Source of the DNA: Epithemia pelagica
Taxonomy: Eukaryota > Protista > Bacillariophyta
Direction: 5' to 3'
DNA: 64,000 nt
NCBI GenBank assembly: GCA_946965045.2
Contig: OX337231.1
Span: forward strand, 1,178,001-1,242,000
The translations under genes and the position numbers were made by a program. The first letter of the stretch is position 1. Each line of letters begins with the position of its first letter. Below, one piece after another: positions 1-21,204 of the stretch. The notes beneath the pieces were generated by a model, which ran no database searches, was not told the origin of the DNA, and saw nothing but the letters and a program-made list of their open reading frames with translations.

Positions 1-379
1 TCCTTTGAATTCCCTTGAGACCATTGGTTGATTGTTGTTTTGGTGGATTTCGGTTCATTGATTGAATCTGTCTTATTCGCTATTGGAATTTACCTGATTG
101 TCAAAGAGCTTATTTCTTCACCTGAAAACCACAAACCATTGTTTGTGATCCAGTTGCGGCTGTGTTGGATTGTTCTCTTATTTCTTGGTGTTCAAAGCCT
201 ATTACCGTCAGCCTTTTCAACCTGTTGCTTGTCGAATCTTTGGTTGGATTGTTGTTTGGTTGGATCTTGATTCTCTGTCTATTGAATCCAGGAGTCGGCC
301 GTTTCACCGATTGTGTTTCTTGTTTGTTGGATTGAGCCTGTGACCCTGTGGTGGTGGTATTGTGCCCCTTCTCTAGTTC

Positions 380-840
380 CTGAGTGCCGAAAGCCTTTTT
401 GAATCCTGTTCATTATCTCGAAGCTATTGTTGGATTGTTGGCTTGTTTGGATTTTGATTCTTTGTGACCCAGTGGTGTTGGTATTCGATCCGCTGTCTTG
501 TTTTGGAGTGCCGCAAGCCCTTTGAATCGCTTTCTTGTTGATCTCGAATCTATTGTTGGATTGTTGGTTGGCTCTGTGACCGAGTGGTGTTGGTATTCGA
601 TCCGCTGTCTTGTTTTGGAGTGCCGCAAGCCCTTTGAATCGCTTTCTTGTTGATCTCGAATCTACTGTTGGATTGTTGGTTGGTTTGATTTGATTCTTCT
701 TTGCGACCCTGTGGTTGTTGATTGGATCCCTTGTCTTATTTTTGAGAGCCGGAAGCCCTTTTGAATCCCTTTCCTGTCGATCTCGAATCTATTGTTGGAT
801 TGTTGGTTGGTTGGAATTTGATTCTGTGCATCATTGGTAT
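380..840. repeat. Degenerate tandem repeat, ~112-bp unit, about 4 copies
   Basis: gtattcgatccgctgtcttgttttggagtgccgcaagccctttgaatc starts at 481 and 593; looser copies flank it on both sides. Confidence 0.8.
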
Positions 841-2584
841 TTGGATTTGCGGTCTTGAATACTGTGGTGGTACTGGAGGACTTGATCTTGTAAGCATTTC
901 TTGAATTGTGAATGATTCCTCCCTGTTACAAGAAAGTACAAACAAGCTGGTGAAAAGGTAGTAGCCAGTTGTCTCTAATACTTTCTTTCGGGATTGATAT
1001 CTATGCAGGAGTGGTACCTGTTGGTGGTCTAATGTCAAGCAACATGTCGGAGCAAAACGAAGATTCTGTGCTGGTTGGTGCTTTGCCTGCCCCTTTCAGT
1101 GAAGCAATGAAGAAGACTCCCTTGACGTTGGAACGAACAGTGTTTTTTGTACATGAGCGATGGAAGGAATGCCCTATTCAAGACTGGGTTGCTATCGATA
1201 TAGTGTACCCCATTGGTCCTACAGCATTGGTCCACGACTTTAGAAGACAAATGATCGTCAAGTTGGCATTGCCGCCTTGTTCCTCTACGTTACTACAAGA
1301 TATCCTTTGTCATGCGGCATTTTGTATCCCCAAGATACAAGCCGAGGTGGGTCATGACTGCGACAAGGAGCCATTCCGGACTGCTGCACTACGCATGTTC
1401 CTGAGGACTCTGTATGATAGTGCGGTGGATTACTGGCAACGAGTTTTTCCATCTGGCACAGAAGAAACTATCGATGGGCAAGAGCTTGGTTTTCGACAGA
1501 CAGTTGTTCATTGGATCCGGAATCATGAAATTTTTGGAAACGATGACACAGTTATATCAGTGTCCTTAGATGCGCTGAAGGTTCATTTGACCGACCATCG
1601 CTTTTACACTACAAGCTGACGTACGATGGAATCAAGATTCCCGTGTTGGTTCGAGGCCTTGAGTTGCTCCAGAGGATTCATAAATTGATCCATCCCAGCC
1701 AGGAAGAATTGTCACAGGGGGAGATCGTAACTGCGTTTGTTTCTACTATGCCCGATAAATTTCTCGTCACCTATGCTGAAGAATTTGGTGGGACGGAAGA
1801 ACAAGTCACATCACTGAGTTTGACACATATTGCTATGCGTTTTTCTAATATCGCGGATGCTGTCCACCGTGATGCCTGTTTTGAAGATATAAAGCGTACG
1901 ATGAAAAGACGGCAGCTGAAATTGAATCTGGCCCGACAATCGCAACCTGATCGTGTTGGAACTGAAAACGACGAATCGAATATCATAGAGGAAAGGAAAA
2001 GGAAACACCCGGGGAGTGAGAATATTGGCACCGCTGAAGTTCCCCTACAGTCAGAGACAAATGTAGATGCGTCTTTTCTATCGGCAACTGAACGTCATGA
2101 TATTGGAGATGTTGGAGAACCCGCATGGAACATCAAGCGATCCAGGCCTACTATTATGGAGTCTCAACAAACTATATCATCTCCTGTGGCAAAACGAGTC
2201 CTAAACCTTGAAGATAACGAATCCCACGAGTCTGTTCTGGATAGAAAAAGTTGTTCAAGTGCTGTCGTGTCAAATGGTCAGCCCCCGCCTATTCCTACAC
2301 AAGTATCGGATGAATACGAAATCGCAATGATGGATCGGAAACCCCCGGCTAAAAAACTTCCGCCTGTTTTGTCTCTTAAGCAACCTCCGACTCAAACTAC
2401 CAACAATGACCATACAAATGATGGTGGAGATCTACAGGGAGAACCACCACATGTTGATATTGAAAGCGGTCAAGAAAACTCATCAAAGGAGCGAGTGGTG
2501 GACCCAATTTCAGCTGTTAAAAAGGAATATCCAGTGGGACAGGGAAATACAGAGACGACCATTGACCAGGCGACTGATTTGATG

Positions 2585-3088
2585 ACCATTGTCCGAGGAG
2601 ATGAGCTTACAGTGGGGACGACCAATGTCCAGGTGACTGATTCGACGACCATTGCCCTAGGAGATGAGCTTACAGTGGGGACGACCAATGTCAAGGTGAC
2701 TGATTCGAAGACAATTGCCCGAGGAGATGAGCATATGATGGGGGCAACCAGTGACCAGGTGACAAAGTCAATGACCATTGCCCGAGGAGATGAGCATTTG
2801 ATGGGGGCGACCAGTGACCAGGTGAAAGAGTCAATGACCATTGCCCGAGTAGATGAGCTGACAGGGCGGACGGCCAATGTCCAGGTGGCTGATTCGAAGA
2901 CTGTTGCCCGAGGAGATGAGCTTTCTTTGGGGACAACCAGTCTCCAGTTGACTGCTTCGACGACCATTGCCCAAGAAGATGAGTTTGCAGTGGGGAAGAC
3001 CAGTGACCAGGTTACTGATTTGACAACCATTGCCCAAGAAGATGGGCTTGCAATGGAGACTAGTGATGTCGTCACCGAACAGATTACA
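2585..3088 (+). repeat. Coding tandem repeat, 63 bp (21 aa) x 8
   Basis: Units start at 2585, 2648, 2711, 2774, 2837, 2900, 2963 and 3026; consensus TIARGDELTVGTTNVQVTDST. Confidence 0.95.
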
Positions 3089-3659
3089 CATGAAGATTCC
3101 CAATTAGTTGAGAATGTCATGCACGACGATAATGAAAACGGAACAGCTGTTGCTTATGATGATGGTGTGTCAGACAGACTGTTTCGTTTCTCTCCACCCA
3201 AAGGATGCCATGGTGATGTTTGGTATAAGGAAGCCCAAATAATTGAGGATGTGCAGGTTGCGGCTAGAGGAAGACTACGTTATGAAAGAAGTTGTGTGAG
3301 AGGATATATAAACACACAATTGCATGATGCAATGAACTTGCGGACAATAGTTGCTGCTGAACGGGGAATCGATATGAAAGCCGTCACTATACCTGTTGTC
3401 TTTTCCTGTCAAACATGCAAGCGTTTCTGTGGAATGATGATACAAAACACACATTCCAAAATTTTGCAGCTTCCCCATCCATCATATTGACGTCGCTTGC
3501 TCTTACAACCATCAGAGAAGTGGGATGATGAATTTCCGGCGGAAATGTTCGATGTAATCGTACAGAGTATTATTCATCGAATGCATCTGGAACGTGTCTA
3601 TGTTGACTATGGTTTTGACTTGGACGACAATGCAACCCAAACGGTGGCAGTGGAGGATT

Positions 3660-4010
3660 GGAAACAGAACGAAGAGATAAGATTCCTGGTTGTGTTTGTG
3701 TCTAAGATCAATGGAAACTCGGGGAGAGACTCCTATGCCATGGTTATTGCCCAACTTTTCGATACTACTATCTATGTCTATGACCCGTGTGAAAATTCGG
3801 TGGACTATTGGTCAGATACTGTATCTCAGGTCTTAAAGAGGTGATGTTTGGATTCTGTGTTGACAGTGTGTCAAGGGTGGACGACTAAAATGCTCTTGTC
3901 AAAGAGATTTGGAATTGGGTACTCTAGTGCTGGAGGAAGAGTTCCTGTCCAGCTATTTTGCTTGGTATCGTTCTATTGGTTCATGGAGTATGTACATCGA
4001 TATTCTATTG
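3660..4010 (+). other. Ulp1/C48 peptidase-like region, probably catalytically degenerate
   Basis: SYAMVIAQLFDTTIYVYDP and FCLVSFYWFMEY resemble the HW.L.VI....I.YYDS and CG.FVL.FME segments of C48 proteases, but the His of HW is not present. Confidence 0.35.
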
Positions 4011-4414
4011 TTCCAGGAGTGAAGGTCGTTCCGTGGCATAGCATGACGAGTGACCAAATGGATGATATACTCCTTATCCGTCAATTTTTCAATAATGAAA
4101 TAATGGAAAACCTTCTCTGGATGAAGCTTTCTTCGGCGATCCGTCCTGTTACCATGAGACCAATTGACTCCGCTCGTCCTGACAATCTGGACGAACATCC
4201 TAGATACGTGGTGGACAGTGGAGACATGAACAATATTCCTGATGTATACGATGGTGATGAATATAGTTTCGAATCCGAAGACAAGTTTGACCGAAATCTG
4301 GACCCAGATCACTACACATGTTCGGCGGATAACCATCAACTGGCCTATGACAACCTTACATTGGTGAGGAATGAGATTCCTGATTACTTGCGGTCTTTGG
4401 CGGATGAGAATGTA

Positions 4415-5425
4415 TGTGTCTGTTGTGAAAGGTGTTTGCTCGACACAGGGGACGATGGTTTTGATGCTACACATTTAGAGGGAAGGTGGGGACCCATCGA
4501 TCGTGAACGATATTCACCTGTTTGCATTCTAGAGGCATGTGGGCATAAGATTCACAAGATTTGTCTCCAAATCAGGTTGGCCAAGGGATTGGAGAACTGT
4601 CCGGTGTGCGGTGTCAGTATTGAAACAGAGGGGAGAAATAATCCTAATATATTGGAGAAGCGTACTGGTAAGAAGTTTTCTATTCACGAAATTATCGAGG
4701 AATATAACGGAGAATCGATCCAGGTGGAAGAACATCATGATGATATGAATGAGAATGTGAGACAAGGCAGTGGTGACCAGAGAGTCGTCAATAACATGGG
4801 TGGAACCAATGCTGAATCAACTCCTACTATTGATAGGACTGCTACTCCTGCTACTACTGCTACTCCCTTGGTCGTGGTGGATCTGTCTGTATCACCTTTA
4901 GATGACAACAACGTTGGATCGATTGATTTATCTACCAATATGGGGGTTAGAGAAGAAACCATGGACAGTGCCCAACCCGTACCTAAAAGAGAGGATGATG
5001 GAAGAGTCATTGATCTAACCGATTCACCTCCGACACCGAGAGTATCAGATCCACAACAATGTGCCATTTGTCTGGGTACAAGTACAAGTGATTGTTTTGT
5101 GGAAGGATGTGTTCATTATTTCTGTCGTACATGTATTGCTCGTTGGATTGATCCAAGAGGAAGGACCACCAATGCCAGTGACAAATGTCCGGCATGTCGG
5201 GAGACGGTTCGTACGCTGACTTATTTTAATCCTATGAATCGGATTATTGAAAGAAAGAATGTCTCGGCGGTTGATCATGTGAATGCTTATCGGAGTGAGG
5301 TTAACCGATCGGTTGCCTGTGGAAGATGTGTGGTTTGTCACACAAGAGCAAATTGTTCGTCGGAGAGCTGCAACCATCAATTTTGTCGGTATTGTATGTA
5401 TCAGCGTAAAGAGTTTTCTGAAAGA
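4415..5425 (+). other. Three RING finger domains (one RING-H2, two RING-HC)
   Basis: CERC...CGHKIHKIC...CPVC (~4415-4610); CAIC...CVHYFCRTC...CPAC (~5060-5200); CVVC...CNHQFCRYC...CPEC (~5318-5425). Confidence 0.9.
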
Positions 5426-5638
5426 GGCGGATTGCATCGATTGCCACCGAATTGTCCTGAATGTCAAGACGAAATAGTACGAGTGACTTTATTTCAAGGA
5501 CATTCCGGCGTGGTGGAAGATGTTGGAATTCATATCAATGATGTGACTCCAGAGATATTGGGAATCCGAAGAACTACCTCTACGAACAACAGAGAATGGG
5601 GAAGTTTTTCGAATCTACCGAATCCTTTGATCAATCGA

Positions 5639-6585
5639 GAACAAGAACGGAATCCTAGAGTGGATTCCACTGCTCGTTCAAGCGCAAGTGGACGGGCTAC
5701 TGCTGTTTCTCCAACCACTACTTGGGGAGCACGTGGTACTATTGTTGATCGAGGTGTTTCTGGTACTGGGCGTTCCAATCCTGGTTCGGTGGTACAGGGT
5801 ATGAATGAAAGTCAATCTGGTACGGATGCTACTTGTGGAGTTCGATCCACTACGGCAAGTGAAGGGGTTGCTGCAAATTCAAGCCATACCTCTGCGGTCT
5901 CTGTAGTTTCTATTCCGCGTTCGACAAATGGTTGGGGGGCTCGGCCTGTTGTTGCTCAAGGAGGTACTGCTGTTGCGCAGTCGACAAATGGTTGGGGGGC
6001 TCGGCCTACCGTAGCTGGAGGAGGTACTACTGTTGTTTCGCATTCAACGAATGGTTGGGGGGCTCGGCCTGTTGTTGCTCAAGGAGGTACTGCGGCTGTT
6101 TCACAGTCAACGAATGGTTGGGGAGCTCGGCCTGTCGTAGCCGGAGGAGGTACTACTGCTGAATCGTGGTCGACGAATGGTTGGAGGGCTCGGCCTGCCG
6201 TAGCTGGAGGAGGTACTACTGCTGTTTCGCAGTCGACGAATGGTTGGGGGCTCATCCTGTTGCTGAACAAGAACGGAATACTAGAGTGGATTCGAATGCT
6301 CGATCTAACGCAAGTGGAGGGGCTACTGCTGTTTCTCCAACAACCACTTGGGGAGCACGTGGTACTATTGTTGATCGAGGTGTTTCTGGTACTGGGCGTT
6401 CCAATCCTGGTTCGGTGGTACAGGGTATGAATGAAAGTCAATCTGGTACGGATGCTACTTGTGCAGTTCGATCCACTACGGCAAGTGAAGGGGTTGCTGC
6501 AAATTCAAGCCATACCTCTGCGGGCTCTGTGGTTTCTATTCCGCGTTCGAAAAATGGTTGGGGGGCTCGGCCTGTTGCTGAAGGC
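5639..6585 (+). repeat. ~320-bp direct duplication enclosing six 60-63-bp STNGWGARP tandem units
   Basis: gaacaagaacggaat...ggggctcggcctgttg occurs from 5639 and from 6265. Tandem units start at 5921, 5981, 6044, 6107, 6170 and 6233, with a seventh at ~6547. Confidence 0.95.
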
Positions 6586-7861
6586 CGGTCTGTATCCAGT
6601 TATTGGTCGGCCAATGACAATGAGACGTCTGTAGTTAATGGAAATCATTGGGTTCAATGGAGTCCACAAGTAAAAGACCAGCAAGGCCGGGGTGATCATC
6701 GAGGGGTTCAATGGAGTCCACAAGTACAAGACCAAAGCCAGAGTGGTATACCATCATATTCTCCCATGGCATCACAGGCACCCCATCCAGGAAACTGGGG
6801 TAACCAGTCGGGATCCTATTCTTTGAATCATATTGGACCTCAAGGATGGTGTAATGGACCTCAAGGATGGTGTAATCCTTCAAATCATGGAGAAAGTGGA
6901 TTTCATAGGGGGGCTCGTGGAAGTCCTCAACATCGGTGTGGTAGGGGTGGAGGGCGGAGGTTTTTTCGTGGAAGTCCACCACATCGGTCCGGTAATGGTA
7001 GAGGAAGCGGTTGGAATCAAGGTTACGAAGGAAGTGCGAGTCCATCACATCGGTGTGGTGGTGGTAGAAATGGCTGTTGGAGTGAGGGTTGTGGTCGGAG
7101 TAGAGATTGTCGTTGGAATTATGATTATTGTGGGGGTAACAGTTCTCCACATGGTCGAGGTTATCCACGTGGTAGAGGTGGTCGTTGGAATGATCATCAT
7201 GGTGTGGGTAATAGTTCTCCACATGGTAGAGATCATGGAAGAACTGGACCTCCTATGCAACGAAGTGGTAGGAATGGAAGTAGTCATTGGTCTCCTGGTC
7301 GTGGTGGAAGAGGGAATAATGAAGGTGGTTATTGGTCTTCTGGACATGGCGGAAGAGGAAATGATGATGGAAGAAATTATGTGACACGAGATCATTTCTG
7401 GGAAGGGAATCAACATGATGGACCTGAATCAGCAACAAATTTTCAGAATCATCAAGGCCAATCGACTGCACTTTCACCAACAAGAAATGCTGGGGGTCAA
7501 CGTTCTCAATGGAATCAGCCTCCAACTCCACCTGTAAGGGACACTGGAACAAATGCTTCGATGCCACCTCCCCCCCCCCCCCCCCCTCCTGCGAGGGAGA
7601 TGGCTAACACCAATTCCTCTAATGGGTAAGCTATGTTCGATGCGTCTGGTTTCAACGACTGTCTTGTGCAAAATTCAGAATGAGAACGAATGAACTACTA
7701 TATGACTACAGTCTGGTGAAATTTGCTCATAATGCGCTTCTCGTTGTATTCTAATTCTCTATAAAATTCAATGTGTTCTGTCACTTCGACATGTGTGTGT
7801 GCTTGTGTGTTTCTGTGTGTGTTTGCATGTGTGTGTGTGTCTGTGAATTAGTATCCATACA

Positions 7862-9608
7862 ATGGGGAGGTCTCCGCTGGAATTTAACAATGCGTATCTG
7901 AGGACCATCATGAAAAAGAAACCACAACAATCTAGTGAGATCATCATGTCCGTTACGGAAAAGGCCGATTGCTGTCACGAATTAATATCCTTCTGGAGTC
8001 ATGGAGAAACTGAACGTAAATCTATACTGGCTGGAATGGTTGCTTTGTGTTTTGGTGGCATGGACAACCAGAAATCGTTCTCTCGTGCGTTCATACATGC
8101 TTCTCAACAAGATGTGTTACGACTGGAAAACCTTGATAAATTTTTAATTCGGAACATACCGACTGCATATCTGAGGATGGATTCATACTGTGGTGAAGAA
8201 TCAGAGGACCCTGCATATCATTCTTCCTGTGGCTTTGAAAAAGTTGTGGTCAAACAACAAGACACGTGGGCTTTGACACATGAATGTCACTGTGCGTTCC
8301 TAGTCGATTGCACATTGGAGAGGACAAATAGAGCAAAACGATCCGTATCAAAAATGAGCTCCAAGTCATTCTTTGATGACACTGTTGTGCACATTCGTAC
8401 ATCCAAAGCTATGATGGAGGACAAGAATGACATGCTATTCCGGGACCTGATTATTGTTTTACCTTTCGCAGGTGTATTCTATACTACTTCAATGACGAAC
8501 AATGGTTTTTCACGCCGATATGTCCCATTGCCTTGGACATGGTTACGGTTACGTCATGACAATGGTAAACCAGCCGCGGGTGCCTTCGTGCGACATATTC
8601 ACCGATGTTTGTCTATTGATTGGGGAAAGAATAGGTTGAACAATGTGGAGAATCCTACGCTGGCATATCATTGCTATCAGATGAACGATGCAGAGACCGG
8701 TACTCCATTGTTGCCTCCAGATGTCTATCTCGCTTCAAGGAAACCAATTTCCTGGCGAAAGTGTTCTTTGAATAATCATGCTCTACGAGTCAAGTATCGT
8801 AAATTATTGGAGGACAGTCCATCGCAAAGATATGGTTGCCGACGATATGTTATTGGAGCATTGCACCAAAATTCGGGGGATGGATGTCTGCGGTATGATC
8901 AAAGGATAGATGGAGATGCCACCTTCTATATCACAACACGGACTATACATGGGCGACCGGAGTCCATATCTGTTTTGAAGGTTACGGCATTGGATGATAG
9001 AATGTTTGGTGGTCTATCGTCACTCATGAGGAAAGCGACATGTACTTACACTAGTCATGCTAGGATGAGGAGGGGGAATGCTCGAGCAAACCGTGGTGAT
9101 AAGGGTGGGATGACCGTGACTGGAATGTTGTCTTGCAAAGAAACCAAATCGCTGGTCATGTCAGATACAATCATCAAGCATGACCATGGTTTTTATCATA
9201 CTCTTCCTAAGATATGCAGAGGAGTGCGTCGATTTTCGGAAACAACATGTCAATCTGATGAATGCCACACACTATGATGCTTCGGACGCTTCGGTATGTT
9301 TTGTAATATGGACAGAAACTTCCCCAAATACAACGGAGGGATGGTACTTTGTCTTGCCTAATGTACTCATCAAGAAGGATGATCGCTCTTACATGGGTCT
9401 ATGCATCAGGTTATTCCATGGTGTTTCTATCATGTGGGATGGACGAATTATCAGGCATGGAACTTCCCTGCACTCAACTACACCAAATTCTGATGGCACC
9501 CCTAACTATACTATGGGTTGGTTCTGGGGGACAAACACTAAGATTATCTCAACTGGTAGAAATGGGGGAGACAAACCTATTGCTGACAACACTGACAACA
9601 CTCAGTGA
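7862..9608 (+). pseudogene. TET/JBP-like 2OG-Fe(II) dioxygenase, split by a frameshift or deletion near 9250
   Basis: The downstream frame has NATHYDASD (HxD, 9270-9278) and GVSIMWDGRIIRHGTS (distal His, 9456-9458) with double-stranded-beta-helix-like spacing. The upstream 471-aa ORF overlaps it and stops at 9277. Confidence 0.6.
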
Positions 9609-10881
9609 TGATGATTGTTGGAGACTGCATTGAAACCATATCGGAATAAGACCATGTAATTGAAAAATCACCCATATCTGCGGAAAGCAACCAGTCAGAC
9701 CATTCACGGGCATCTCCAATGCAGGAGGAAGGAATCCACCTATCCATCCCCATTGATTTCAGATCGTTGCGATGTCCAATGAAATCCTCACCCATTTTCA
9801 CAACAGCCTGTTTTATCATCAAGAGAACCGGTTTAGAGAAACTATTGATTCCCTCCCAATTGGGCATTTCAAGTTCAAAGTGAAGAATTCTCCGTACCAC
9901 ATGACAAAACCTCCACACAAAATACTTATTTGGTGAAGACCAACACTTGATATAACTTACGCACTCTTCTTCAGAGTTTGCAGGACGAAGACAGCATTTA
10001 CAAACCACGGGCAGATTCATTTCTGTTATCGTTGAGATCTCTTCATTCAGTAAGCGACTCGTGTAAAGTTGCTCTCGGCACTTGTTTTCGTCACAATGAT
10101 GTTCACAACCTCCAAATTGGATTCCACATCCGTAACAGTTCTGTTGGCATCTGCTGGATGTCCCAAACTGATGCCAGCAATCCTCTTTCTTCTTGATGGG
10201 TATTGCTTTAGTTAAGACACAGAATGGACAGATTGGGTTAGGTGGATGATGGTTTGATCCCACTATGTTGTTGACCAACGTGGTAAATTTGATCACTTCT
10301 TCATGTAAGTCATCCCTTGATGACCTACCAAGGCCTTTCACTGGTGGAGAATCGGGGATGATCTGTATTTGTGTGTTATTAAGAATTGACCGTTGATTCT
10401 TTTTGACATCATTGCTGATTGGCTCTTGTTGTTTTGTTCTCGATTCCAACGAGCATGACTTTTCTCTTCGAGGAGGCTTCACTTTGGCTTATGGATTGAT
10501 AATGGATGATTTCTCTTGTCTATTCTGACTTGTACTGCGTTGCCCACTATTCAACTCAGTCTTTGATTCGGGATATGAATGTCTTTTTGTTGGGTTTGAT
10601 ATGGTGTGTGGATTGGTTATGATTGATTGCCTGGCGACATCCTTCTTGTCAGAGGCTTTGACTCTCTTTCTGTACGGGTTGGCAATTGTGGATTTCCCCT
10701 CTTGCTCATTAAGTTGACTATTTTTGTTGTCTGCCTGTGACTTTCTCTTCTCTGGAATCATATCAGTTGTTTGAAGTCCACCACAATCACTGATGTTGTT
10801 TCCAATCTCATTCATGGCGGTCCCTGGGTGCACTCTATTTGGACTTTTGACATGTGACAATCGTGGTACACTCTCTGTCAT
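9577..10881 (-). pseudogene. Cys-rich protein of unknown function with one in-frame stop
   Basis: ORFs 10489-10881 and 9577-10482 are in one frame, split by TAA (NP*AK, compare NPY earlier in the protein). Cys clusters: CPFC, CQQNCYGC, CEHHC, CKCC. Confidence 0.55.
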
Positions 10882-11021
10882 AGAATCTATGCGGTACTTG
10901 ATTATTTATGGAAGGAGCATGTCACTATGATTGTTACAGTACTACAGATTGACGAGAAGAGGAGTTTACCTTGTTGGTATGTGATGAGTGTTTGGACATT
11001 TTGTTACACTCACTGCCAACC

Positions 11022-14000
11022 TCATTTTTGCCGTTTCGAAGTCTCCATGGTTTCTGATGTTGTTGATTGTCTAATCGAGTTTGTATCTTTATCTCCAGTC
11101 TTGCTGCCACACAGCAAGTCAGTTCGGTGAGACGACCTTGTTCTTTTTTTTGGATCTGTTCTACGCTCAATATGGGACGCTCTGTTTTGGTTTTTCATTC
11201 CATACGTCGCTCCACTTGCGAATTCATCCGCCCATTTCTTGACGTCTTTGACTTCCCAAATGATATCGCTGTACTTTTGATTTTTTGCATCCTCCCTTAA
11301 TAATGACTGTTCAGTTTCAGATTGGAGAAATTGTCCTACGGCGTCTCCTTCATTGATCAACTCTGGATTCTCATCGATGACACCCACTTGACGAACAATC
11401 CAGTTGACAGGAACTAAGACAATCTTTGCTGTTTCCCTTTGATTCCCAGTTTTTACATACTGCTTGCTCCATCTTTTGAAAAGTGTGGAACTTCTTTCCT
11501 TATCAAGCTTCGACATCTCACACTCTTCGGGTGGTAGTTTCGGGTGTGTCGTTCTAAGAAGGACGTGTGTGAGACCTTGCTTATGTTGTACCAACGTGTT
11601 TCCTTTGGATTGTTGTTGTGTATCTGTTTGGGAAACCATTTGTTTGTCAAGGCAGACAAAGCACATCACTTGACAAGGAATTGTGTGGTAGGCTGTTGGA
11701 TTCACTGCGTTGAATATTGGTCCATCGGTTTCATCGGGAATTTTTGCCATTACCCAATCTCGCCAAGGTCCATTCCCTTGATAATTTGGATGAGAACGTA
11801 CCATACCGATTTCATGTTTCTCCATACCAAAAGTGGCCTCTGTACAACACTCTATGACAAATGAATCACTGTCGAAGACAATGACGTTTGCTTGGTTTCC
11901 CTGGGATGAGGACTGCTTCTGATTATGGAATGATGTGGCATGTCGTTCGAAATACGAAATAACAAAGGGAGGTAAAAGCATACCATGTTTGGTTTGTGTG
12001 TTGAAGTGAACGTCCACCTTGAAATGATGAGAATTTTCTTGCCGTGAATATACAATCATGAAATTCGTTCACTTCCATCCCCTTCGGACTATACACATAT
12101 CATCTTGGATTGGTTGTTGTTCCCTTCGTAACTGGCAGTCGTAAGGTGACATTCCCTGTTTCAGTTCATCTATTTCAGTTGGCCCAATTCCCGCGGCCTG
12201 TCGGAAGAATTCTAACTTTTGCATCCACCAGATGCCATGGCCGAGTTGTGCAGTGAAAATCCCGTCACCTCTTTTCTGCACGGTTTTTGCGTTCTGCTTA
12301 ACGATTTCCTTATGATTGCTTTCCTCAGCCTCAACATCTATTCCCATAACTGGTCCAAAATTCGAAACTTGTTGCACGATATGAACCAAATTATGAAACT
12401 TGGGGATTCTCCATCCGTTGGATAAAATTTTCCCTTTCTTGTCAAGTCTGGGTGCATGCCGTCTGATCTTATCCATCATTCGACGTACAGATTCCAATGC
12501 CCTAGCCTTTTTGGCCTGTCCAGTTGTGGATTCAAAATCTGATTCCCAGAAACAATCCATACGCACCCAGCTATTGAATGTAAGCAAACATTTGAACAAC
12601 TCGAGGAAATCAAGACATGGTTCTCCTTCCCCATTATCCCATATAGATTGGTATGCGACGGGGTCATCGGCAAAGAAACTCTCACGTGCTTCATTGAGGT
12701 CCTCCTCATCCTCTTCGTAATCATCATCGTCGGGATCACCGCCCCTCTGGTCGTCATTCTGGGGTGATGCATCATTTCTATTACCATTGTCTGTTACCAG
12801 AGGTGGAAGTATCACCCTTTTTACAACCTCTATCCCATGCATTCTGAGTTTCATCCAGACACCACCCTGCTTTTGAATTTCCCGGAGATTCTCTACGATG
12901 ACGGACAACTGAGCATGGTAATTCCGACATGGACTCCCTGTCGACAATGTTGCCCTGACAGACGACGATTTCTGATCCATATCTGATATCAAACCAAGAA
13001 TCATTTGGCGTTTTGCCTCTCGCATTTCGGAAAGCTTCAGGAATGAAGGTACCATGACAACTGGTTCTGCACAGAATCTTCCATCACCGGTGACATGTGT
13101 CTTGTCGGTATATGCGAGTAAACCGATGACAAATACATCTGGATCATCTTTATATTTACAAACTGTCTCCTGGAAAACTCGTGCGTCTTGAATATTTTCG
13201 ATAAAGCGATTTGGTTTATATGGTTGATAAGGATTATCCCTGTCCAAAATCGTGTTTTCCGAACTGGTTGCTTCTGGATCTTGTATCACCCGTCGAAGTT
13301 GGTGGATGAAATGGAATACTATGGCATTGATCCTCTTTTCACTTAATGGTACTAACAAGTTTCTTTTGTTGGCATATTCCATTGGGATGGGAACCTCTTT
13401 TGGAGGAGGGAATTCCTTAGTCCGATTCTTCTTCTTTTGTGCCATAGATTCCTCATCATCATCATCCAAACTCTACAAGTCAAATTTTTTCAGGAACGCT
13501 TCTCGTTTTTTGTGTTTGTGTTCCAAAAAATTCGAACCACAACGGGAATATGTATCCCGAAGCCAACTGAGAATGGAATCAAACAGATATTTGGGGGTTC
13601 CTGCACTTTTGAGCAACAATAACAATCTCAACAGACATCGTTCATGCTCGCTCATTTTGTTTCGGATTATATCAGCTCTCATGTATGATGGGAAATCGTA
13701 TGGATTTGATTTTGAATTCGCAGAAGATGAAGATATAGTGCTGGACTTGTCTGTTCTATCTACAGAAACTTGGTCGTTTGTCAAACTCTCAACTGGTGTT
13801 TCCTCTTGACCATCATCGATGTACATACTCTCATCTTCTTCTTTCGTATCATGGGATGTATCGATGCCAACATTTGGGATCTCAACGCACATATCGAGTT
13901 CCAAAATATTTTGTACATCCATGTGGTTGAACATATCACCGTGTATATTGACTGATGAGTCCACGTCGGGTTGATTCATGTCGGTATGTCTTGTTATCTG

Positions 14001-14146
14001 ACCACATGCATCTTCGTGGCAACGGAGACCACGAAGACCAAAATTCTGTCCACAAAATCTACAATAACCAGATGGACAGGATGCAACACCACATGGTTCA
14101 CCGTTGAGGATTGTTTGTTACTGTATGTTCGCCGTGACCTTCCCAT
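11022..14146 (-). pseudogene. Plavaka-family (CACTA/EnSpm-related) DDE transposase, disrupted
   Basis: N-terminal C2HC finger CRFCGQNFGLRGLRCHEDAC; LLAYTDKTH...AEPV; KFHNLVHIVQQVSNFG...EESNHKEIVK; C-terminal VRSHPNYQGNGPWRDWVMA. Lesions: 1-bp frameshift at ~14113-14116, TAG at 13473-13475, TGA at 12069-12071, and a probable internal deletion near 12790. Confidence 0.85.
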
Positions 14147-15459
14147 TTCAACGTATTTCGCATCACGTACTACTGAAATGGTCGTGTTGGTATGTTTTCG
14201 ATTAGATGACAATTTTACAAAGTTGGTTGGATGTTGCAGGTCGACTGGCGTTCCAAGAATGGCTGGCGTGGCGCGGATACATATGTGTCTTGGAGCGGTT
14301 TTTTTTAATTTGTTATGGAGGAACGGTCGGTGGAAATATACGTTTTCGGAATGATGATGGAGAGTTTATGCTTATCCATTAAGTCTTTTGGCGGACAGGC
14401 GATTGTGGTTCACGCATGCTCGGTTTTCTCCTTTGGCGCTTCATTTTGAAAATTCTCCTGGAGTGTATGACTGCTCCGTGTTATCATCGATATGCATTGG
14501 TTCTATTTGAGTTGTCGACTGGCTTCATCGGAAATACAAATGAAGATTGATCGATGAGAAAGTAGTACATCAATGTCATAAAAGAGCAATGGTAAGAACG
14601 ACGAGCAATTCAACGAAGGCAAAAAGTGGGACAAGCGGAAGGCAAAACAAGCGTAAAAATGAGGCAATCTCAAAACAAGCAGAAGGAGAGAAGAACAATG
14701 AAAACTGTGACCCACAGCAGACTGATTCGGCAAACACGACGCGTCAACAAGTCGTTGGTAGAGACGAAGCAATTCAACATGTTTCTAAAACAAAACCACC
14801 GGAAGTGAACCAATTGATATCTACTTTGTCGGGTCCAAGTACGACAAACGATTTCGTGGATCCAGAGGTTGCCAAGGTCTTTGAAGACGACGATGATGAT
14901 TCTGAAAAACCAAAGGATGGACGACAGGATGAGAACAGGAATGCAACAGATGTAAGCAGGGCACCTTCAGACAATGACACGAGGACGGCTAATTCTAGTA
15001 GAAGCCAACCACTGTTTGATGGCCGGAGTCAGGACGCAATAATGGGATCAACAGTGGAGAATTCTGTTAATACACGGGTACAATATCACCAGATGTTGAA
15101 TCATCGAAACCAATCTTTTGGACAATATGATACATCTACCACTCGACCAGAAGCAAGTTCTAGTTTCGATAGAGAAGTACAAACCAAAGATTTGGCACCA
15201 ACTGGACAAGAAGTGATGACGGACCTAAATTCCAGGATGCCGGTCCAGACTCAAGCTAGCACCATACACATGGGACAACGAACATGGACGTCTCATATTC
15301 CAATGAACCAATATGAACAAGGATGGAATGGAATCCGGACACAAAATGGTCCAAATGGTCAATATAACTACCCACAGAGGGGAAACGGGGGGTTACCTCC
15401 ACAGATATCAGTACAAGCACAACAAAGAGACCATCGGTTATGGAACAATCAGTATGCTG

Positions 15460-15690
15460 AAAGTGGGACACAACAGAGCCAGAACAATGTCTTTCAACAA
15501 ACAACTATGACTAATGTACCACAGCAGGGCCAGAACAACGAATATCAACAGATGGATATGACGAATGGACCACAACAGGGTCCGAACAGCAATGTATATC
15601 AACAGACAGATATGACGAATGGACCACAGCAGGGTCAGAACAATGTATATCAACAGACGGATATGACGAATGGACCACAGGAGCAGGAGT
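15460..15690 (+). repeat. Coding Q/N-rich tandem repeat, 51-54 bp, 4-5 copies
   Basis: QQTDMTNGPQQGQNNVY-like units start at 15495, 15546, 15600 and 15651. Confidence 0.9.
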
Positions 15691-16697
15691 ACACAAATAA
15701 CTGGAGACGGGACGATGGTCAACAGGATATGAGAAATGTACCACAGGGACAAATGGCAAAACAAGTTCAAACAGACTTAGAAAGGGAGGCGTTGGATCCT
15801 AACCAATTTGGTTTTTCACCTACAGAAACAGAAGCGATATGTTTTCCTAAACCAATGTCTCAAGTTGGTACGTATAAGAAGTTTTCGAACAGAGGTGGGG
15901 TCTTCTCGGACTCTCATGATTGATGTTGTTGGGGTATATCATTGATAATCTGAACCAGATGCTTGTCTTGCTCATGATGTCTCTTCATTGTCTGATATGT
16001 CATCGACATACACAGGAGATCAGGAACGTTGTATTGCAAACCTACGGCCTGGATATATATTTGTTACCACGGGTGAGAGGTTGGTTGTAAGAGCATCCAC
16101 AAGTAATGATACACATTCCAAACAGTCGTCAAATAAGAAGAAAAACTCGAACAAATATACAGAACCAAAACAAATGCCTATCATCTTGGGACTACAAGAC
16201 TTCAAAGACTTTGTCAAGTATAAGGTTTTCCGATTCATCAAATACTATGATCCATACACAGATTGTAAACCTGACAGTGAACTGTACACTTTGTTTTGTG
16301 CTGAATACGACAACTACATCAAGGTTACCAGAATTACAGATACATTTCAATGGTTTAAGGATTGTTGTGGGGATATTCAGAAGATCTTACGACAGAAACG
16401 GTCGAACGCATTGGGACAGTTTGCCAAGAAGTTCAAACGTGAGTGTTGACTTGTTCCATGAGGACTTTGTTGTGATGTTCATTGCCTAGCTAACCATTCT
16501 TGTGTTTGCATGAGAACAGGACGAGTTAAGATTGATTTGTTTTGTACCTATAAGGGTGGGATCCTCTCTGACAACTTTTCTGAGCACCATAAAATGGATG
16601 ATTATGGACTTATGCCGAGCATTGAGGATTTCATGAATATGAGGGGGGATAACGGAAGAAGTGATCATTACATATACATGTTTGAGCTTTTTGGTAT

Positions 16698-16830
16698 TGC
16701 TGTGTACGGTGAAAATGTATATCGAGAGGTAATTGATCCACCGCTGGGTGCACAGCAGAATACTGCTGTGTACGGTGAAAAATGTATATCGAGAGGTAAT
16801 TGATCCACCGCTGGGTGCACAGCAGAATAC
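16698..16830 (+). repeat. Tandem duplication, 66 bp + 67 bp
   Basis: tgctgtgtacggtgaaaatgtatatcgagagg...cagcagaatac occurs twice; copy 2 has an extra A (gaaaaatg). Confidence 0.95.
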
Positions 16831-17761
16831 GGTGGAGGGGAGAGTGAGCATGTGGAATGAAAGAAGTCTGAAAAGATTCACTTGTAATGACGAGGCATGG
16901 ATGCTTTTGGTATTGGAAGATAACTGGTGTGTTTGGTATAACAAGGCAGTCGATGAACTATCTGCGGAGATTCGAAGCCTCAGTAACAAGGAGTTCATGC
17001 AACGGTATATGGAACAGGGATTTTTACAGAATCGATATCAGGAGGGTTATAGGTATTCACAGGGTGTGGGTGAGTCACGGAAGATGAATGAGAAAGGATT
17101 CGATCGGTTGGAAGCCTTAGAACGGCGGGTGCAACAGGATCGGTTGAGATCAGGAGCAATTTTCATGGAAGCATTGTATTCTAAATATCGAACGGTGATG
17201 GGATACACAACTCAAAGGAATGATAATGTTAACAATGTGAGACGGCAGCGCTTATTTGTTTGATGGTGTGTGGAGAGAACATATGAATGCTAGATGAATT
17301 AAAATTTGAATTATTGTGGACAAAGACTTGCTACCTTTGTGCTGCATATGTGTGATTGTTGTGTGCCTGTGGGTGATTGTTATGTGTGTGTTTGAGAGGT
17401 GGATGCACATTTCATTGTCCTTGTGTGCGCATATGTTGTCATGATGGGCACCTGATTTGTCATGGAGATGGTGATGGTTCTCGGGGTGTTGATGTGCATG
17501 TATGGTTTTGTGGTGTGCATGAAGGGTGAGTTGTTTGTGTGAGTGATCGTGCGCATTATGTGGGGGGTGGGGGGGGTATGCGCGGGGTGAGTGTGGTGGT
17601 GCGTGTGTTGTGTGGTGAGTGCGCGGTGGGGAATCTGTCGTGCGAGGACTTTCGGATAATTCAGTCGTGAAATTTTGGTGCGATTGAGGAGGCGATTGAA
17701 TGGGGCGCCTGAACTTACCCTTTGATGGACGTACAAGGAAATATTCCAACAAAATCTGCGG

Positions 17762-18220
17762 ATGGAGGACGCTGTTGCATCGATGGCAGAGGAAATTTCA
17801 CGGCTTCGTGAGCTTTCTCTTCCCGGTTATCCGATGGCAAGTCAAATTAAACCAATGAACCAAAATGGTGAAGACACTGACGAAGTAAATGATGCTGATC
17901 AAACTGTTGTTTGGTTGCCAGACCATCAAGAACCTCCAGACACAGCCCAGATAGTACACTGGCCACTGCCACAAAATACACCCTGTCCGACATTTCCAGT
18001 TCCAACTGTTAGAGCAAGAAGAGGAACACGAGTAGTCGCAAATACGCAAGTAGGTGCCAATTCAAATGGAACCTTCACTAACCAACCTGCTATCACTGCG
18101 AGCAAACGGGGAAGAGATAAAGCGAAGCGGCGGAAGTGAACATGTAGGATGTGTGGGAAAAGTCAAGAAGAGTGTCCCGGTGCTTGGCAAATCGGAAAAT
18201 GCACTCAGGGCAGTGGCTGA
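17762..18220 (+). pseudogene. Short ORF with C-terminal Cys motif behind an in-frame TGA
   Basis: KAKRRK*TCRMCGKSQEECPGAWQIGKC; the TGA is at 18137-18139 and the next stop ends at 18220. Confidence 0.4.
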
Positions 18221-18310
18221 TTGTTAGTTACATAAGCAGTGGTGGCCGTGGAGGCTTTCTCGAAGGTGGAGGAGGTAGCAACAATCGTGCGTCAAGGATG
18301 CCGACTTCAT

Positions 18311-18680
18311 GGATCATCGTACCCATGGGCCAGATGACCCATTACAATCTTTTTTAGTTTCGTTCAAGTTTTTCGAGAAACGGCTTGGCCCAGGATGATC
18401 GCACCCATGGGCCAGATGACCCATCCCAATCTTTTTAAGTTTCGTTCAAGTTTTTAGGTAACCCACTCGTCATTCGAGAACTGGCTTGGCCAAGGGTCAT
18501 CACGGCCAGATGACCCATCCCAATATTTTTTAGTTTCGTTCAGGATTTTAGGTAACCACTCGTCATTCAAGAAATGTCTTGGCCCAGGATCATCGTACCC
18601 ATGGGCCAGATGACCCATCCCAATCTTTTTAGTTTCTTCCAAAATGAAATATTAACCACTCATCATTCGAGAAATTGGGA
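18311..18680. repeat. Subterminal-type degenerate tandem repeats, 82-101-bp units, 4 copies
   Basis: ggatcatcgtacccatgggccagatgacccat-like cores start at 18311, 18393, 18494 and 18587. Confidence 0.85.
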
Positions 18681-18992
18681 AGCTCGTCCTTGTCATTACG
18701 ACGGACACAAGGCAAACTCGTGCCGCAATCAAAGCAGAAACACAAGAACAGCCAATCAAACAGAAAAGGGACTCCGAGTTCAGCCATGTCGTGTTTGGTC
18801 GAACTAGTGTGGTGGTTGAAGGAGGGTGGCCACATGTTGGGATAACCATGTTTGTCTTGTTGCGTTCGCTATTGTTTGTTTCGCGTCGTTCGTGTAGAGA
18901 TCGCGCAGCTAAGCTCGCTTCGCTCGCGCGAATTATTTTTGTCGCTGCGCTCCACCGCTACGGTATTGGTGCCATTCAATTTGATAGCCATA

Positions 18993-19074
18993 GCTATGGT
19001 TACAAAAATGCCGGGAAAGTTGATAGCTATACTTCCCAGTTCCCAGGGACACCCGGCATTTTTGTAACCATAGC
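18993..19074. repeat. Perfect 23-bp inverted repeat with 36-nt spacer
   Basis: gctatggttacaaaaatgccggg (18993-19015) and cccggcatttttgtaaccatagc (19052-19074). Confidence 0.95.
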
Positions 19075-19104
19075 GGGGAAGTCGCGAGTCGGACGTTTTC
19101 ATTC

Positions 19105-19355
19105 ACTAGTGCCTACACTCTGGGTGTGCCCATGACGGACGAAAATGTGACATTGGGCACATAGTTTCAAATAGATAGAACTCGATCAATATTAGCCCTA
19201 TGACAATGATCTGATGCTTCTTGCCAATCTTTAGGTCATTCTCTGTCACCATTTGATGCCCCATTTGGGCTACATATGACATATCTTGGTCATAGGAGTG
19301 CCTCAATCGGAGGCTTGATGCATTTGTGGAGTGTGTGGGCACATTCTGGGCACAA
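19105..19355 (+). repeat. Left terminal inverted repeat of the piggyBac-like element
   Basis: actagtgcctac...gtgtgcccat...cattgggcacata...tagataga...caatattag...catatct.ggtcata...tgtgggcacat matches the right end in inverted orientation. Confidence 0.8.
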
Positions 19356-19401
19356 TATAGAAAGTGATGTCAAACGCTTGTTTTAGACCAGTTATCTACT
19401 A

Positions 19402-19989
19402 TTAATCAAAGTTGTAGTCAATATAAGGTTCTTGAGTCTCTGCAAACTCGAAGGAAAGGTTACTGTCCACGCCAATGGATGAATTGCGCTTCCCAGATTT
19501 TCCCAGTAGATTGCCATTGGTCGAAGTGCTGTCATTGTTTTCCTCATCATCATAATTGATCCACGGTTCCATGATCTTCACAGCAGCAGAGTGTTTTTCA
19601 TTGTTTCCTGGTTTCTTGTTCTCCTTGAAGCGCATGGCAATTGTGTCAAAAGGAGATGGAGATGACAACTCTGTTTCTGAATGGAAGACGAACACATGCG
19701 TCTTCTTTTCCACAACCTTGGCTTGAGCCGAGCTTACGAGCACATCAGCCTCCCGCTTCACCTTCACATTCTCTGCCATTGTCAACTTGTTCTTGCAATT
19801 CTTGGTCTTTGATTGTTTTTTGCTTGCTGGAGCCGTCTTCTTACGAGCACGTGAGGATGTGGCTTGACTCGAAACAGAGGTGGAAACTGGACCAAGGAGA
19901 ACGCATGGCTGCAACGATGAATCCGAAGCCCCTTTGGTGCGCTTCTGGTTGCGTAGACTGATGCGACGGCCGTTGACGATTGTAGACAT
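19402..19989 (-). CDS. Hypothetical basic/Ser-rich protein, cargo of the piggyBac-like element
   Basis: Open frame from ATG 19989 (MSTIVNGRR), within the 224-aa ORF; no recognisable domain. Confidence 0.4.
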   Translation of the reverse strand: MSTIVNGRRISLRNQKRTKGASDSSLQPCVLLGPVSTSVSSQATSSRARKKTAPASKKQSKTKNCKNKLTMAENVKVKREADVLVSSAQAKVVEKKTHVFVFHSETELSSPSPFDTIAMRFKENKKPGNNEKHSAAVKIMEPWINYDDEENNDSTSTNGNLLGKSGKRNSSIGVDSNLSFEFAETQEPYIDYNFD

Positions 19990-20377
19990 TGTCTTTTTGT
20001 TTTGATGTCCAATGGATTCTCTCTCCCCCTTCGCAAACATGCAAAAGATGAGGACAACGGGTCGTGTCTGTTGCAATAGGTTCCGAACGTAGAAATGTCA
20101 CGCCAGCCAACAAAATTTCCTTAAATAAGTGGTGCGCGCCACGAGAACGGTTGGAGGGAAAAAGCAGTCCATGCCCTCACAAATCTCAAAACAAACACAA
20201 TCACACAACAGATTCGAACTGACTTTACTACTGGACAGATTTAGCTTTGTAAGCGCAACACAGACAGGGTAGTGAGTGAGTAGTATCGCAGTGGAAATCA
20301 TGGAACTGTGCTATTCAAATCGTCTGCCTTTGACTCACACTTCTACAAAGTTTTCAATTCATCAATCATCCAGCAAG

Positions 20378-20969
20378 ATGCCAGAGAGTGGCAGCAAGAG
20401 ATTCGAAACGATGCAGCTGGCGAATGGTTTCACCGTTGTCTACGACGGTGGACAGAAGCTCGACACCAAGGGTGAGACAGTGACGATGTTCGGTGAGGCA
20501 GGGGTGAATGCATACCTGAGGTCAGCTGGGGGTGGAGAAAAAGAAGGCGTCAGTGATGGCCGGTTGATTGTTGACCGTGGTGTTTTGCTGTTTCAGAGAA
20601 CCTTTCTGTCTGAACTACGCCCAAATGCACTTTCAATTCCTCTTTGATCGTTCTCAAAGAGATGATTCAGTTCCAGAGCTTGTAATTCCGCTTGAATACG
20701 TCAGCAATCAACTGGAAAGCATGATTCTTCGTTCAAGCAGTGGCAAAGTCATTAAGGGCAAGATTGTCATTGCGACAACCCACTCACTCAACACAGTGAT
20801 GACAATGGATCCTATGGTTGTCACTGTGAAGATGAGTGTTGTGGGAGCAACAACGCTCTTAAACCTTATCAACCAGCACCAGAAACGTTGTGGAGACATT
20901 CTGGATCACAAGAAGGATGGCGAAGTCGATGTCAAGTTCTTGGTGATGAAGAAACCAAACTTGTTGTAG
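20378..20969 (+). CDS. Two-exon hypothetical protein, cargo of the piggyBac-like element
   Basis: Intron 20521-20596 (GTCAGC..TTTCAG) joins ORFs 20276-20647 and 20568-20969 in frame (AYLR|EPFCLNY). The start could also be ATG 20300. Confidence 0.6.
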
Positions 20970-21204
20970 AAGTGAAGATTGATATAGTAGTTCTTATTGT
21001 TCATTTTCTTTCTTTTCTAGTATGCATGTGCACTGGCGTTTTTCATAGAATGATATTTAGGAGGAGGAGTGAAAGACGCTACTAATTTGTTTTGTAGAAG
21101 CACTGATATTGCTGCAAATTGAACTACGTACTGTTTTGTTAACTAATCATGTATTCGAGCTTTCATAGAATGCTCAAAGTTCTCATTCATGGAACTCCTA
21201 TTAA

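Follow-up and report, generated by a model that had tools for sequence, protein, structure and literature searches.

A probable giant Plavaka-lineage transposon, now decayed, with a predicted TET/JBP-fold dioxygenase and a multi-RING protein in the Epithemia pelagica genome

Introduction

Are the genes at the left end of a 64,000-nucleotide (nt) stretch of Epithemia pelagica DNA (contig OX337231.1 of assembly GCA_946965045.2, positions 1,178,001 to 1,242,000 of the forward strand; the whole stretch is hereafter the window) parts of one transposon, and could they act against the silencing of that transposon by its host? A first-pass annotation had read window positions 1 to 19111 as a giant Plavaka/CACTA-type transposon equipped with a putative anti-silencing toolkit. 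Our analysis indicates that this block very probably represents one insertion of a Plavaka-lineage DNA transposon (PlavakaB-like, in the CMCT/EnSpm-related clade), which is 18,471 bp long and extends from window position -744 to 17727. Its genes encode a giant RING protein (ORF1), a TET/JBP-like dioxygenase, a Cys-rich protein, a transposase and a protein referred to here as the helper.

The sequence to the left of the window was supplied by contig ERZ21939226:ctg1279l of the European Nucleotide Archive (ENA; loci L001, L003 and L007), which is 99.98% identical to the left 33 kb of the window and adds 6.4 kb leftward of window base 1 (base 6457 of L003). All of the relatives (L002, L005, L006, L010 and L011) were recovered from one assembly (ERZ21939226). 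Homologue searches covered proteins of 0.55 to 1.75 times the query length, and an intact transposase of ~1230 amino acids (aa) or ORF1 of ~2000 aa would escape them; scans of JGI metagenomes with the ORF1 homologue P0162 and with the transposase alignment A4 returned no relatives.

Boundaries of the element

The termini were derived by comparison with a divergent relative, L006/L008 (ctg1344l), which has ~68% DNA identity to the window element. Similarity between L006 and the window contig begins sharply at CATCTAAGGGT, located at window position -744 (5712 of L003) and at -63 of L006, and in the window contig this terminus is preceded by the target duplication GA. The left subterminal non-coding region, which includes window positions 1-929 (+ strand), contains degenerate tandem repeats with a unit of 112-127 nt at 12-825, and their motif TTGGATTGTTG has no mirrored counterpart at the right end of the element. 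The right terminal inverted repeat lies at 17717-17727 (- strand), reading ACCCTTTGATG on the + strand and CATCAAAGGGT on the - strand; it corresponds to the reverse complement of the CATCTAAGGGT motif at 10 of 11 positions and is followed by the target duplication GA at 17728-17729. At the right end of L006, ACCCTTAGATG (15636-15646) matches the reverse complement of the same motif at 13 of 13 positions and is accompanied by the duplication GT, and L006 carries CATCTAAGGGTCG at both of its ends.

Target-site duplications of 2 bp thus enclose both insertions (GA/element/GA in the window contig, GT/element/GT in L006), and in both the right terminus is located ~500 bp beyond the helper gene and ~183 bp beyond a short collinear match. 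The terminal inverted repeats are 11 bp long and start with CATC(T/A)A, with the right end reading ...TTTGATG-3'. Another relative, L005, carries CATCTAAGGGC at the expected helper-side position, which provides one half-site, and the fifth terminal base is T in four of the five ends seen (window, L006 and L005). For a 2-kb search space, the chance of such a match was estimated at ~0.016 in the window and 3e-5 in L006, with a further factor of 1/16 for each duplication. PlavakaB elements have 5'-CATCA..TGATG-3' termini and duplications of 2-3 bp (Kojima 2025, PMC12730594), and the element has termini of this type as well as a duplication in this size range. The proposal that the block is one Plavaka-type transposon running past the left edge of the window is supported, the left end lying at -744; a left terminus matching the right one does exist, although its sequence and position differ from those predicted.

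A candidate terminus in L010 (CGTCTAAGGGC at 6539) was not used, as it falls inside an open reading frame (ORF) adjoining a Copia-like RVT_2 ORF. An empty allelic site was sought via a gene in the right flank, and this search returned ctg1279l itself only. To the left of the element, L003 contains a PIF1-helicase fragment (E 2.4e-11) at 4787-4981 (approximately -1670 to -1476 of the window), possibly a Helitron remnant, and a segment at 1611-1971 that resembles L006 18115-18471 (67%).

Canonical CACTA/EnSpm elements carry TnpA and TnpD genes, CACTA termini, 3-bp target duplications and subterminal repeats. The first-pass annotation had placed the right end of an element of this type at 19111, and such a reading would require CATTCACTAGTG as that end, 94-nt repeats and a hairpin as subterminal sequence, and an CACTAGTGAATG partner further left. 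CACTAGTG does occur at 19104-19111, downstream of tandem repeats and a hairpin, and CMCT elements generally terminate in 5'-CA..TG-3' (PMC12730594). Its presence is nevertheless statistically unremarkable, with two occurrences in the window against 0.63 expected, a number reached by 12 of 100 shuffles. It also forms the left edge of a ~270-bp repeat (19104-19370) that has an inverted second copy at ~25387-25640 (~70% identity), and it is absent from every family member. No CACTAGTGAATG-like sequence or inverted repeat was found when the left 6.4 kb and the first 1.5 kb were compared with window positions 16500-21000, and neither CACTA...TAGTG termini nor a 3-bp duplication was observed. Given the better-supported terminal repeat and target duplication at 17727, 1.4 kb earlier, we consider a canonical CACTA element barely credible, and regard the proposed terminus as the edge of an unrelated repeat.

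The stretch from 17730 to 19111 (no strand assigned) is accordingly flanking DNA, located beyond the terminal repeat and the target duplication of the Plavaka-lineage element and without a match in family members. Its portion at 17730-19100, which matches none of the fetched loci, includes an ORF (17762-18139), three to four 94-nt tandem repeats (18290-18675) and a hairpin with an 18-bp stem near 18970-19080. The 94-nt repeats, the hairpin and CACTAGTG are therefore present as first described, but all of them lie beyond 17727, outside the element to which they had been assigned. Within the ~270-bp repeat bounded by CACTAGTG, GTGCCCA / TGGGCAC motifs occur in inverted orientation, and the repeat is possibly a small non-autonomous element.

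Family members and unity of the element

The closest relative, L002 (ctg1287l), shares window positions 8978-17568 at 98% identity, including the 3' part of the dioxygenase gene and the Cys-rich, transposase and helper genes. It ends abruptly, and no terminal repeats were found at the edges of the match (8978 and 17568). Of the corresponding breakpoints in L002, 5972 and 15163, one falls within the dioxygenase gene and the other within a G-rich tract, and a Copia-type RVT_2 gene is located 6.5 kb away; the fragment may have arisen by deletion, rearrangement or segmental duplication.

The remaining members are more divergent and differ in content. L006 retains both termini, ORF1 as far as the first RING cluster, and the helper, with neither transposase nor TET-like gene detected; it looks like a non-autonomous derivative, judging by its sequence. 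Transposase and helper are present in L005, where ORF1 and the TET-like gene were not detected. L010 (ctg1291l) contains helper (-), transposase (+), TET-like (-) and RING (-) genes together with N-terminal parts of ORF1 (-), and L011 (ctg1332l) has the same set in the same order. Viewed from the opposite strand, the gene order and orientation in L010 and L011 are those of the window, at protein identities to the window of ~60% for the transposase, 36-55% for the TET-like protein and 25-34% for ORF1. The same gene set and order, accompanied by a transposase, is therefore found in two further divergent members, as anticipated for a transposon with its own cargo.

A maximum-likelihood tree was built from 55 TET-like proteins, with the pieces of broken copies linked by X. 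The four element-borne copies formed one clade in it (100/98), separate from the stand-alone proteins P0010-P0012 of the same genome (100/100). The recurrence of the gene order in L010 and L011 and the monophyly of the element-borne TET-like genes indicate that the cargo is ancestral to the family.

These comparisons also bear on the possibility that unrelated insertions, nested in one another, have piled up to form the block, in which case an element with transposase and helper, a separate TET unit and a separate RING gene would be adjacent in this locus only. The partial gene sets of L005 (transposase and helper, with no ORF1 or TET detected) and L006 (ORF1 and helper without transposase or TET) would be consistent with such a pile-up, as would the solitary occurrence of TET-like genes of the other clade and the restriction of the Cys-rich gene to the window and L002 lineage. 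On the other hand, the recurrence of the ORF1-TET-transposase-helper order in L010 and L011 at ~25-60% protein identity implies an old arrangement, the element-borne TET-like genes are monophyletic, the whole gene set is enclosed by one terminal-repeat pair with its target duplication, and no internal terminal repeats or long terminal repeats were found in the window copy. A chance accumulation of insertions is thus very unlikely, and the block remains one element with one pair of terminal repeats rather than dissolving into nested insertions, an outcome that the first-pass annotation had set against its own proposal. The independence of the cargo from the transposase, set against the proposal in the same way, was observed in part: the TET-like genes of the elements form one clade, but the related P0010-P0012 lack a transposase.

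A nested hAT insertion occupies approximately positions 580-8409 of L006 (ctg1344l) and encodes a 1232-aa hAT-type transposase (Dimer_Tnp_hAT, E 2.7e-6). On the opposite strand it has a 629-aa ORF with a sub-threshold match to HhH-GPD DNA glycosylase (E 2.9e-4), and it may represent a further transposon whose passenger gene is of a DNA-repair or demethylation type.

A divergent TET/JBP-fold dioxygenase

The second gene of the window element (7862-9608, + strand; ~610 aa) had been described as encoding an HxD...H dioxygenase and compared with transposon-linked TET/JBP genes, and both parts of this description were borne out, the second through the fold of a homologue. It is a gene for a TET/JBP-like 2-oxoglutarate/Fe(II)-dependent dioxygenase in which positions 9270-9278 encode HYD and the second His lies at 9456, and a 107-bp deletion at ~9248-9251 relative to L002 shifts its frame. 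No match to Pfam Tet_JBP (PF12851) or 2OG-FeII_Oxy_6 (PF20515) was obtained for the window gene, L002, P0010 or P0011, and among 52 relatives one matched each of these families, weakly (E 1.4e-3 and 5.5e-3). Since the dioxygenase fragments matched nothing in Pfam or among PDB sequences, a fold search was used instead, based on the intact homologue P0011 (600 aa; 32-35% identical to the window gene) in place of the broken gene of the window.

P0011 retrieved 530 cluster representatives at E<=1e-3. Residues H497, D499 and H559 were nearly invariant among the 52 aligned relatives, within the motifs S.DL.NASHYD and WDGR.IRHCTS; the window gene retains HYD and ...RHGTS, and with them the HxD...H iron-binding triad. 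An AlphaFold2 model of P0011, calculated with the 52-relative alignment, had a predicted local distance difference test score (pLDDT) of 85.2 and a predicted template modeling (TM) score of 0.87, and showed the double-stranded beta-helix fold of TET/JBP enzymes. A Foldseek search of the PDB with this model returned human TET2 first (E 7e-10), followed by Coprinopsis CcTet, Chlamydomonas CMD1 and Naegleria NgTET1. These four proteins accounted for the top 26 PDB matches (E 7e-10 to 3e-5; TM 0.4-0.54 by target length), with AlkB, FTO and ALKBH3 ranked below the TET-family structures. The dioxygenase of the element is accordingly predicted, from the model of its homologue, to be a divergent TET/JBP-fold enzyme.

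Stand-alone TET-like genes encoding P0010, P0011 and P0012 are located at L004 9834-17110 and L009 9824-13270; the 90% cluster of P0010 has 13 members. Short inverted motifs, ATTTGTCG / CGACAAAT, mark the edges of these stand-alone units. The L004 unit lies among Kelch-repeat genes and is split by a 4.8-kb insertion containing an ORF with weak rve and Integrase_H2C2 matches. This integrase-like ORF next to P0011 was considered as a partner gene and rejected, since comparison with L009 identified the insertion.

A giant multi-RING protein

ORF1 (930-7629, + strand) originally encoded ~2000 aa and is now in pieces (969-1619, 1643-3490, 3497-3844, 3848-6430 and 6166-7629). The breaks are a shift of frame between 1619 and 1643, in-frame TGA codons at 3488-3490 and 3842-3844, and a change of frame in or after an array of glycine-tryptophan (GW) repeats. 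Positions 1643-6430 are in one frame apart from the two in-frame TGA stops. The first piece, 969-1619, was assigned to ORF1 because its counterpart in L006 shares one ORF with the next piece (L006/P0162). Likewise, 6166-7629 was taken as the continuation of ORF1 in another frame, because the 313-bp segment at 5639-5951 is repeated at 6265-6577, a spacing of 626 nt. Collinear homologues were found in L006 (the intact P0162), L010 (an intact-looking ORF of 977 aa) and L011.

Three RING-type Cys/His clusters, recognized by Pfam and by their Cys/His pattern, are encoded at 4415-4612, 5060-5200 and 5318-5467 (+ strand), in agreement with the first-pass annotation. The second (5060-5200) matched zf-C3HC4 at E=7e-7 (29.4 bits; cut-off 21), and two stretches of ORF1 were matched by zf-RING_2, at 27.9 bits for a cut-off of 27.3. 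Weak RING matches were obtained for the homologue of the first cluster in P0162, and the 977-aa protein of L010 has a RING match. ORF1 thus bears a RING-type zinc-finger signature (C3HC4/RING-H2) at the sequence level, and its product would probably act as a ubiquitin-type E3 ligase.

As also described earlier, six GW repeats of the STNGWGARP type are present within ORF1, in a 63-nt tandem array at 5921-6250 (+ strand), and a tail rich in RG/GR and Pro runs from this array to 7629. The array is missing from the 977-aa homologue of L010 and is a lineage-specific tandem expansion; its role as an Argonaute hook is speculative. The Ulp1-like domain that had been proposed for the same protein was not recovered. 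There was no Pfam match to Peptidase_C48 in the ORF1 pieces of the window, in P0162 or in the 977-aa protein of L010, a profile search of PDB sequences with ORF1 returned RING proteins only, and the catalytic residues are not conserved: a candidate catalytic His is present in L006 only, and the candidate Cys is unaligned between the homologues. An AlphaFold2 model of P0162, with an alignment of four rows and a pLDDT of 32, was unusable for the question of a clan CE fold.

Transposase, helper and Cys-rich genes

The transposase gene (13979-11022, - strand) is a single frame interrupted by in-frame TAG (13473-13475) and TGA (12069-12071) codons, and encodes a Plavaka-like DDE transposase. Its Plavaka affinity, claimed previously for this frame, is suggested by sub-threshold matches to Pfam PF18759 (Plavaka) that recur in three family proteins and share profile positions ~42-216: the window protein at 12069-13469 (14.2 bits, E 0.027), P0004 (17.2 bits) and P0003 (17.0 bits; E 0.003-0.004 for these two). 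P0002, the transposase of L002, gave no match. An H(3)H motif (FHNLVH) is found upstream of an EESNHKE stretch, and the catalytic residues were assigned by eye. The window copy has lost 732 bp (244 aa) at 12795 that are kept in P0002 and P0004 and encode the motifs KGDAKSQDN and DVMHTLKSG. We take these motifs, by eye, to be part of the catalytic core, with KGDAKSQDN holding the putative second catalytic Asp.

Head-to-head with the transposase, the helper gene (14547-17263, + strand) was confirmed where it had first been placed, and the same arrangement is present in L005, L010 and L011. It consists of pieces at 14547-15923 (with Q/N-rich repeats), 15988-16449 and 16733-17263, which are in three frames, and includes a 67-bp tandem duplication at 16712-16845. 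There was no Pfam match to the helper gene, although its C-terminal parts are conserved across all family members examined. The previously noted Cys-rich gene is also present (10881-9577, - strand; ~435 aa). It contains an in-frame TAA at 10489-10491 and no known Pfam domain, and was found only in the window copy and L002; a tblastn search gave no match in L004-L006 or L009-L011.

The in-frame stops listed above, together with the frameshifting indels, indicate real damage behind the reading frames that the first-pass annotation had repaired. Since all five genes are interrupted and the transposase lacks what appears to be part of its catalytic core, the window copy can neither move nor produce its proteins. 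Judged from its sequence, it is an inactive fossil.

Several observations weigh against the assignment of this fossil to a single Plavaka-lineage element. At the termini, the left end starts with CATCT rather than CATCA, no close full-length second copy was found, and the ends were defined from one divergent relative and one half-site; termini were not located in L010, in L011 or on the far side of L005. The abrupt ends of L002, without termini, could reflect a segmental duplication. For the transposase, the PF18759 scores (14.2-17.2 bits) are below the cut-off of 26.3, and the C(2)C motif reported for the Plavaka/CMCT clade was not seen in P0002 or P0004. For the cargo, the PDB sequence search gave no sequence-level match of the dioxygenase to solved TET proteins, and the TET-like P0010-P0012 are found in units of ~3.4 kb without a Plavaka transposase. 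The high probability that we assign to a single Plavaka-lineage insertion takes these points into account.

Silencing and the putative role of the cargo

The ratio of observed to expected CpG is 0.735 in the element and 0.90 in the remaining window. Between the window copy and L002 there are 144 substitutions, including 81 transitions, 34 of which are at CpG sites, and where an intact homologue could be compared, C-to-T or G-to-A substitutions account for several of the disabling changes, for instance those from Arg or Trp codons to TGA and from the candidate His to Tyr. The CpG depletion and CpG-biased transitions provide circumstantial evidence that would fit a methylated, decaying transposon.

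DDE cut-and-paste would be the expected mode of movement of intact relatives. The helper protein is probably a partner of the transposase, as suggested by its retention in all relatives examined, even in L006, where the transposase is missing. For the dioxygenase, the probable reaction is oxidation of a modified DNA base on the element or nearby, with 5-methylcytosine (5mC) as the most likely substrate. Such oxidation would relieve methylation-based silencing of the element, as proposed for TET-carrying fungal transposons.

The same structure would also be consistent with cargo that has no part in countering silencing. The dioxygenase might act on thymine, as JBP does, on N6-methyladenine (6mA; CcTet), in 5mC glycerylation (CMD1) or on RNA; alternatively, it might mark the element for transposition or for tolerance by the host, with the RING/GW protein serving as a structural or regulatory factor of transposition. 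The structural neighbours of P0011 do differ in chemistry (TET2, CcTet bound to 6mA DNA, CMD1), and the specificity of the GW array to the window lineage and its absence from the L010 homologue argue against a conserved Argonaute hook. This alternative is nonetheless unlikely on balance, although it deserves more weight than any other that we considered: several unrelated lineages of fungal DNA transposons have acquired TET/JBP genes, and relief of methylation is the favoured explanation there (PMC12730594), while the CpG depletion of the element and its CpG-biased transitions are consistent with a target of methylation. A more ambitious version of the counter-silencing role seems improbable to us, though less so than a pile-up of insertions. 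It would make these elements a non-fungal family with a deeply kept two-part module, in which TET-fold self-demethylation is coupled to a multi-RING E3 ligase that degrades Argonaute or other silencing factors, recruited in some lineages via a GW/RG tail.

Relation to known transposons

Transposons carrying TET genes are known from fungi, where they were first noted by Iyer et al. 2014 (as cited in PMC12730594) and where TET-carrying PlavakaB families are found in Agaricomycotina such as Agaricus bisporus and Gymnopus confluens (PMC12730594). The element described here resembles fungal PlavakaB in its CATCA..TGATG-type termini, 2-3 bp duplications, weakly Plavaka-like transposase and internal TET/JBP-type dioxygenase gene. 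It differs in having five genes, among them those for the ~2000-aa multi-RING protein and the head-to-head helper, whereas fungal PlavakaB elements encode a transposase, a TET/JBP protein and at most a third protein; its dioxygenase is also too divergent for Pfam Tet_JBP, and its left end is CATCT. Nothing fungal was seen in the gene content of the window, which is eukaryotic nuclear, with long and mostly unbroken ORFs including those for a RuvB-like TIP49 ATPase, a GDP-mannose-dehydratase/epimerase, a 2-hydroxyacid dehydrogenase and glycosyltransferases.

Giant Plavaka elements of 17.4-19.1 kb with the accessory genes PAG1-3 have been reported from the red alga Bostrychia moritziana (bioRxiv 10.1101/2025.02.11.637652). 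They share with the window element its size class, a Plavaka transposase, internal tandem repeats and the presence of degenerate copies, which in the red algae are most of the copies. In the red-algal cargo, PAG2 is a DNA methylase/SET protein and PAG3 a putative ParB-like/2OG oxygenase, in contrast to the TET/JBP-fold dioxygenase, three-RING protein and Cys-rich gene here, where no methylase or SET domain was detected with Pfam. The Plavaka 'giant repeats' of Amoebidium appalachense (PMC11244446) are likewise large, Plavaka-associated, intron-poor gene clusters in a non-fungal eukaryote, and are methylated there. They are up to 50 kb long and rich in tyrosine recombinases, with no TET/RING cargo described; the window element has no tyrosine recombinase.

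Some features are also shared with CACTA/EnSpm elements, namely a plausible two-protein logic (a transposase and a conserved partner), left subterminal tandem repeats and CA..TG ends, whereas the non-CACTA termini, the 2-bp duplication and a helper without detectable Pfam similarity set the element apart. The VANDAL (Mutator-like) elements of Arabidopsis, to which the Bostrychia preprint also refers, encode the anti-silencing factor VANC. The concept of a DNA transposon encoding a factor that lowers the methylation of its own copies may apply here by analogy, but there is no relationship to VANDAL in sequence or fold, and VANC is not an oxygenase.

The novelty suggested by the first-pass annotation, which knew of no such cargo set in diatoms, was overstated insofar as TET-carrying and giant Plavaka elements are both published (PMC12730594, 10.1101/2025.02.11.637652, PMC11244446), although no such element had been reported from a diatom in the literature that we searched. 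What appears to be new is an architecture of five genes that includes a conserved giant protein with several RINGs, a highly divergent family of the TET fold and an apparently different kind of host. Documented cases of transposon-borne enzymes for DNA demethylation come mainly from fungi, and those of giant Plavaka elements carrying epigenetic cargo mainly from red algae; the present family, for which the termini, the target duplication, the order of the genes and the tree of the cargo serve as the definition, joins both features in what is apparently another kind of host. The conserved multi-RING protein further suggests that ubiquitin-type signalling belongs to the equipment of such transposons. 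Some of its natural variants have TET and others lack it, and the same is true of the transposase; such variants could serve to test whether TET-like enzymes of transposons lower the methylation of their own copies.

Other features of the window

Contig ctg1279l stops at approximately window position 33090 and has a few mismatches to the window (99.98% identity), which indicates that the window derives from a different assembly version. Proteins encoded at 51-62 kb of the window are present on two ENA contigs (183,863 and 182,385 bp), suggesting separate haplotigs in that region. Segmental duplications with spacings of ~4.8, 5.3 and 10.1 kb and identities of up to 99% occupy 27075-39072 and include paralogous Nucleotid_trans genes at 27075-28982 and 37168-39072. 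Further to the right, a large inverted duplication at 44454-48296, with arms of ~1.3 kb each that are 76-94% complementary, sets two paralogues tail-to-tail, one at 44369-45847 (+ strand) with an HPAT-like match and the other at 46835-48556 (- strand).

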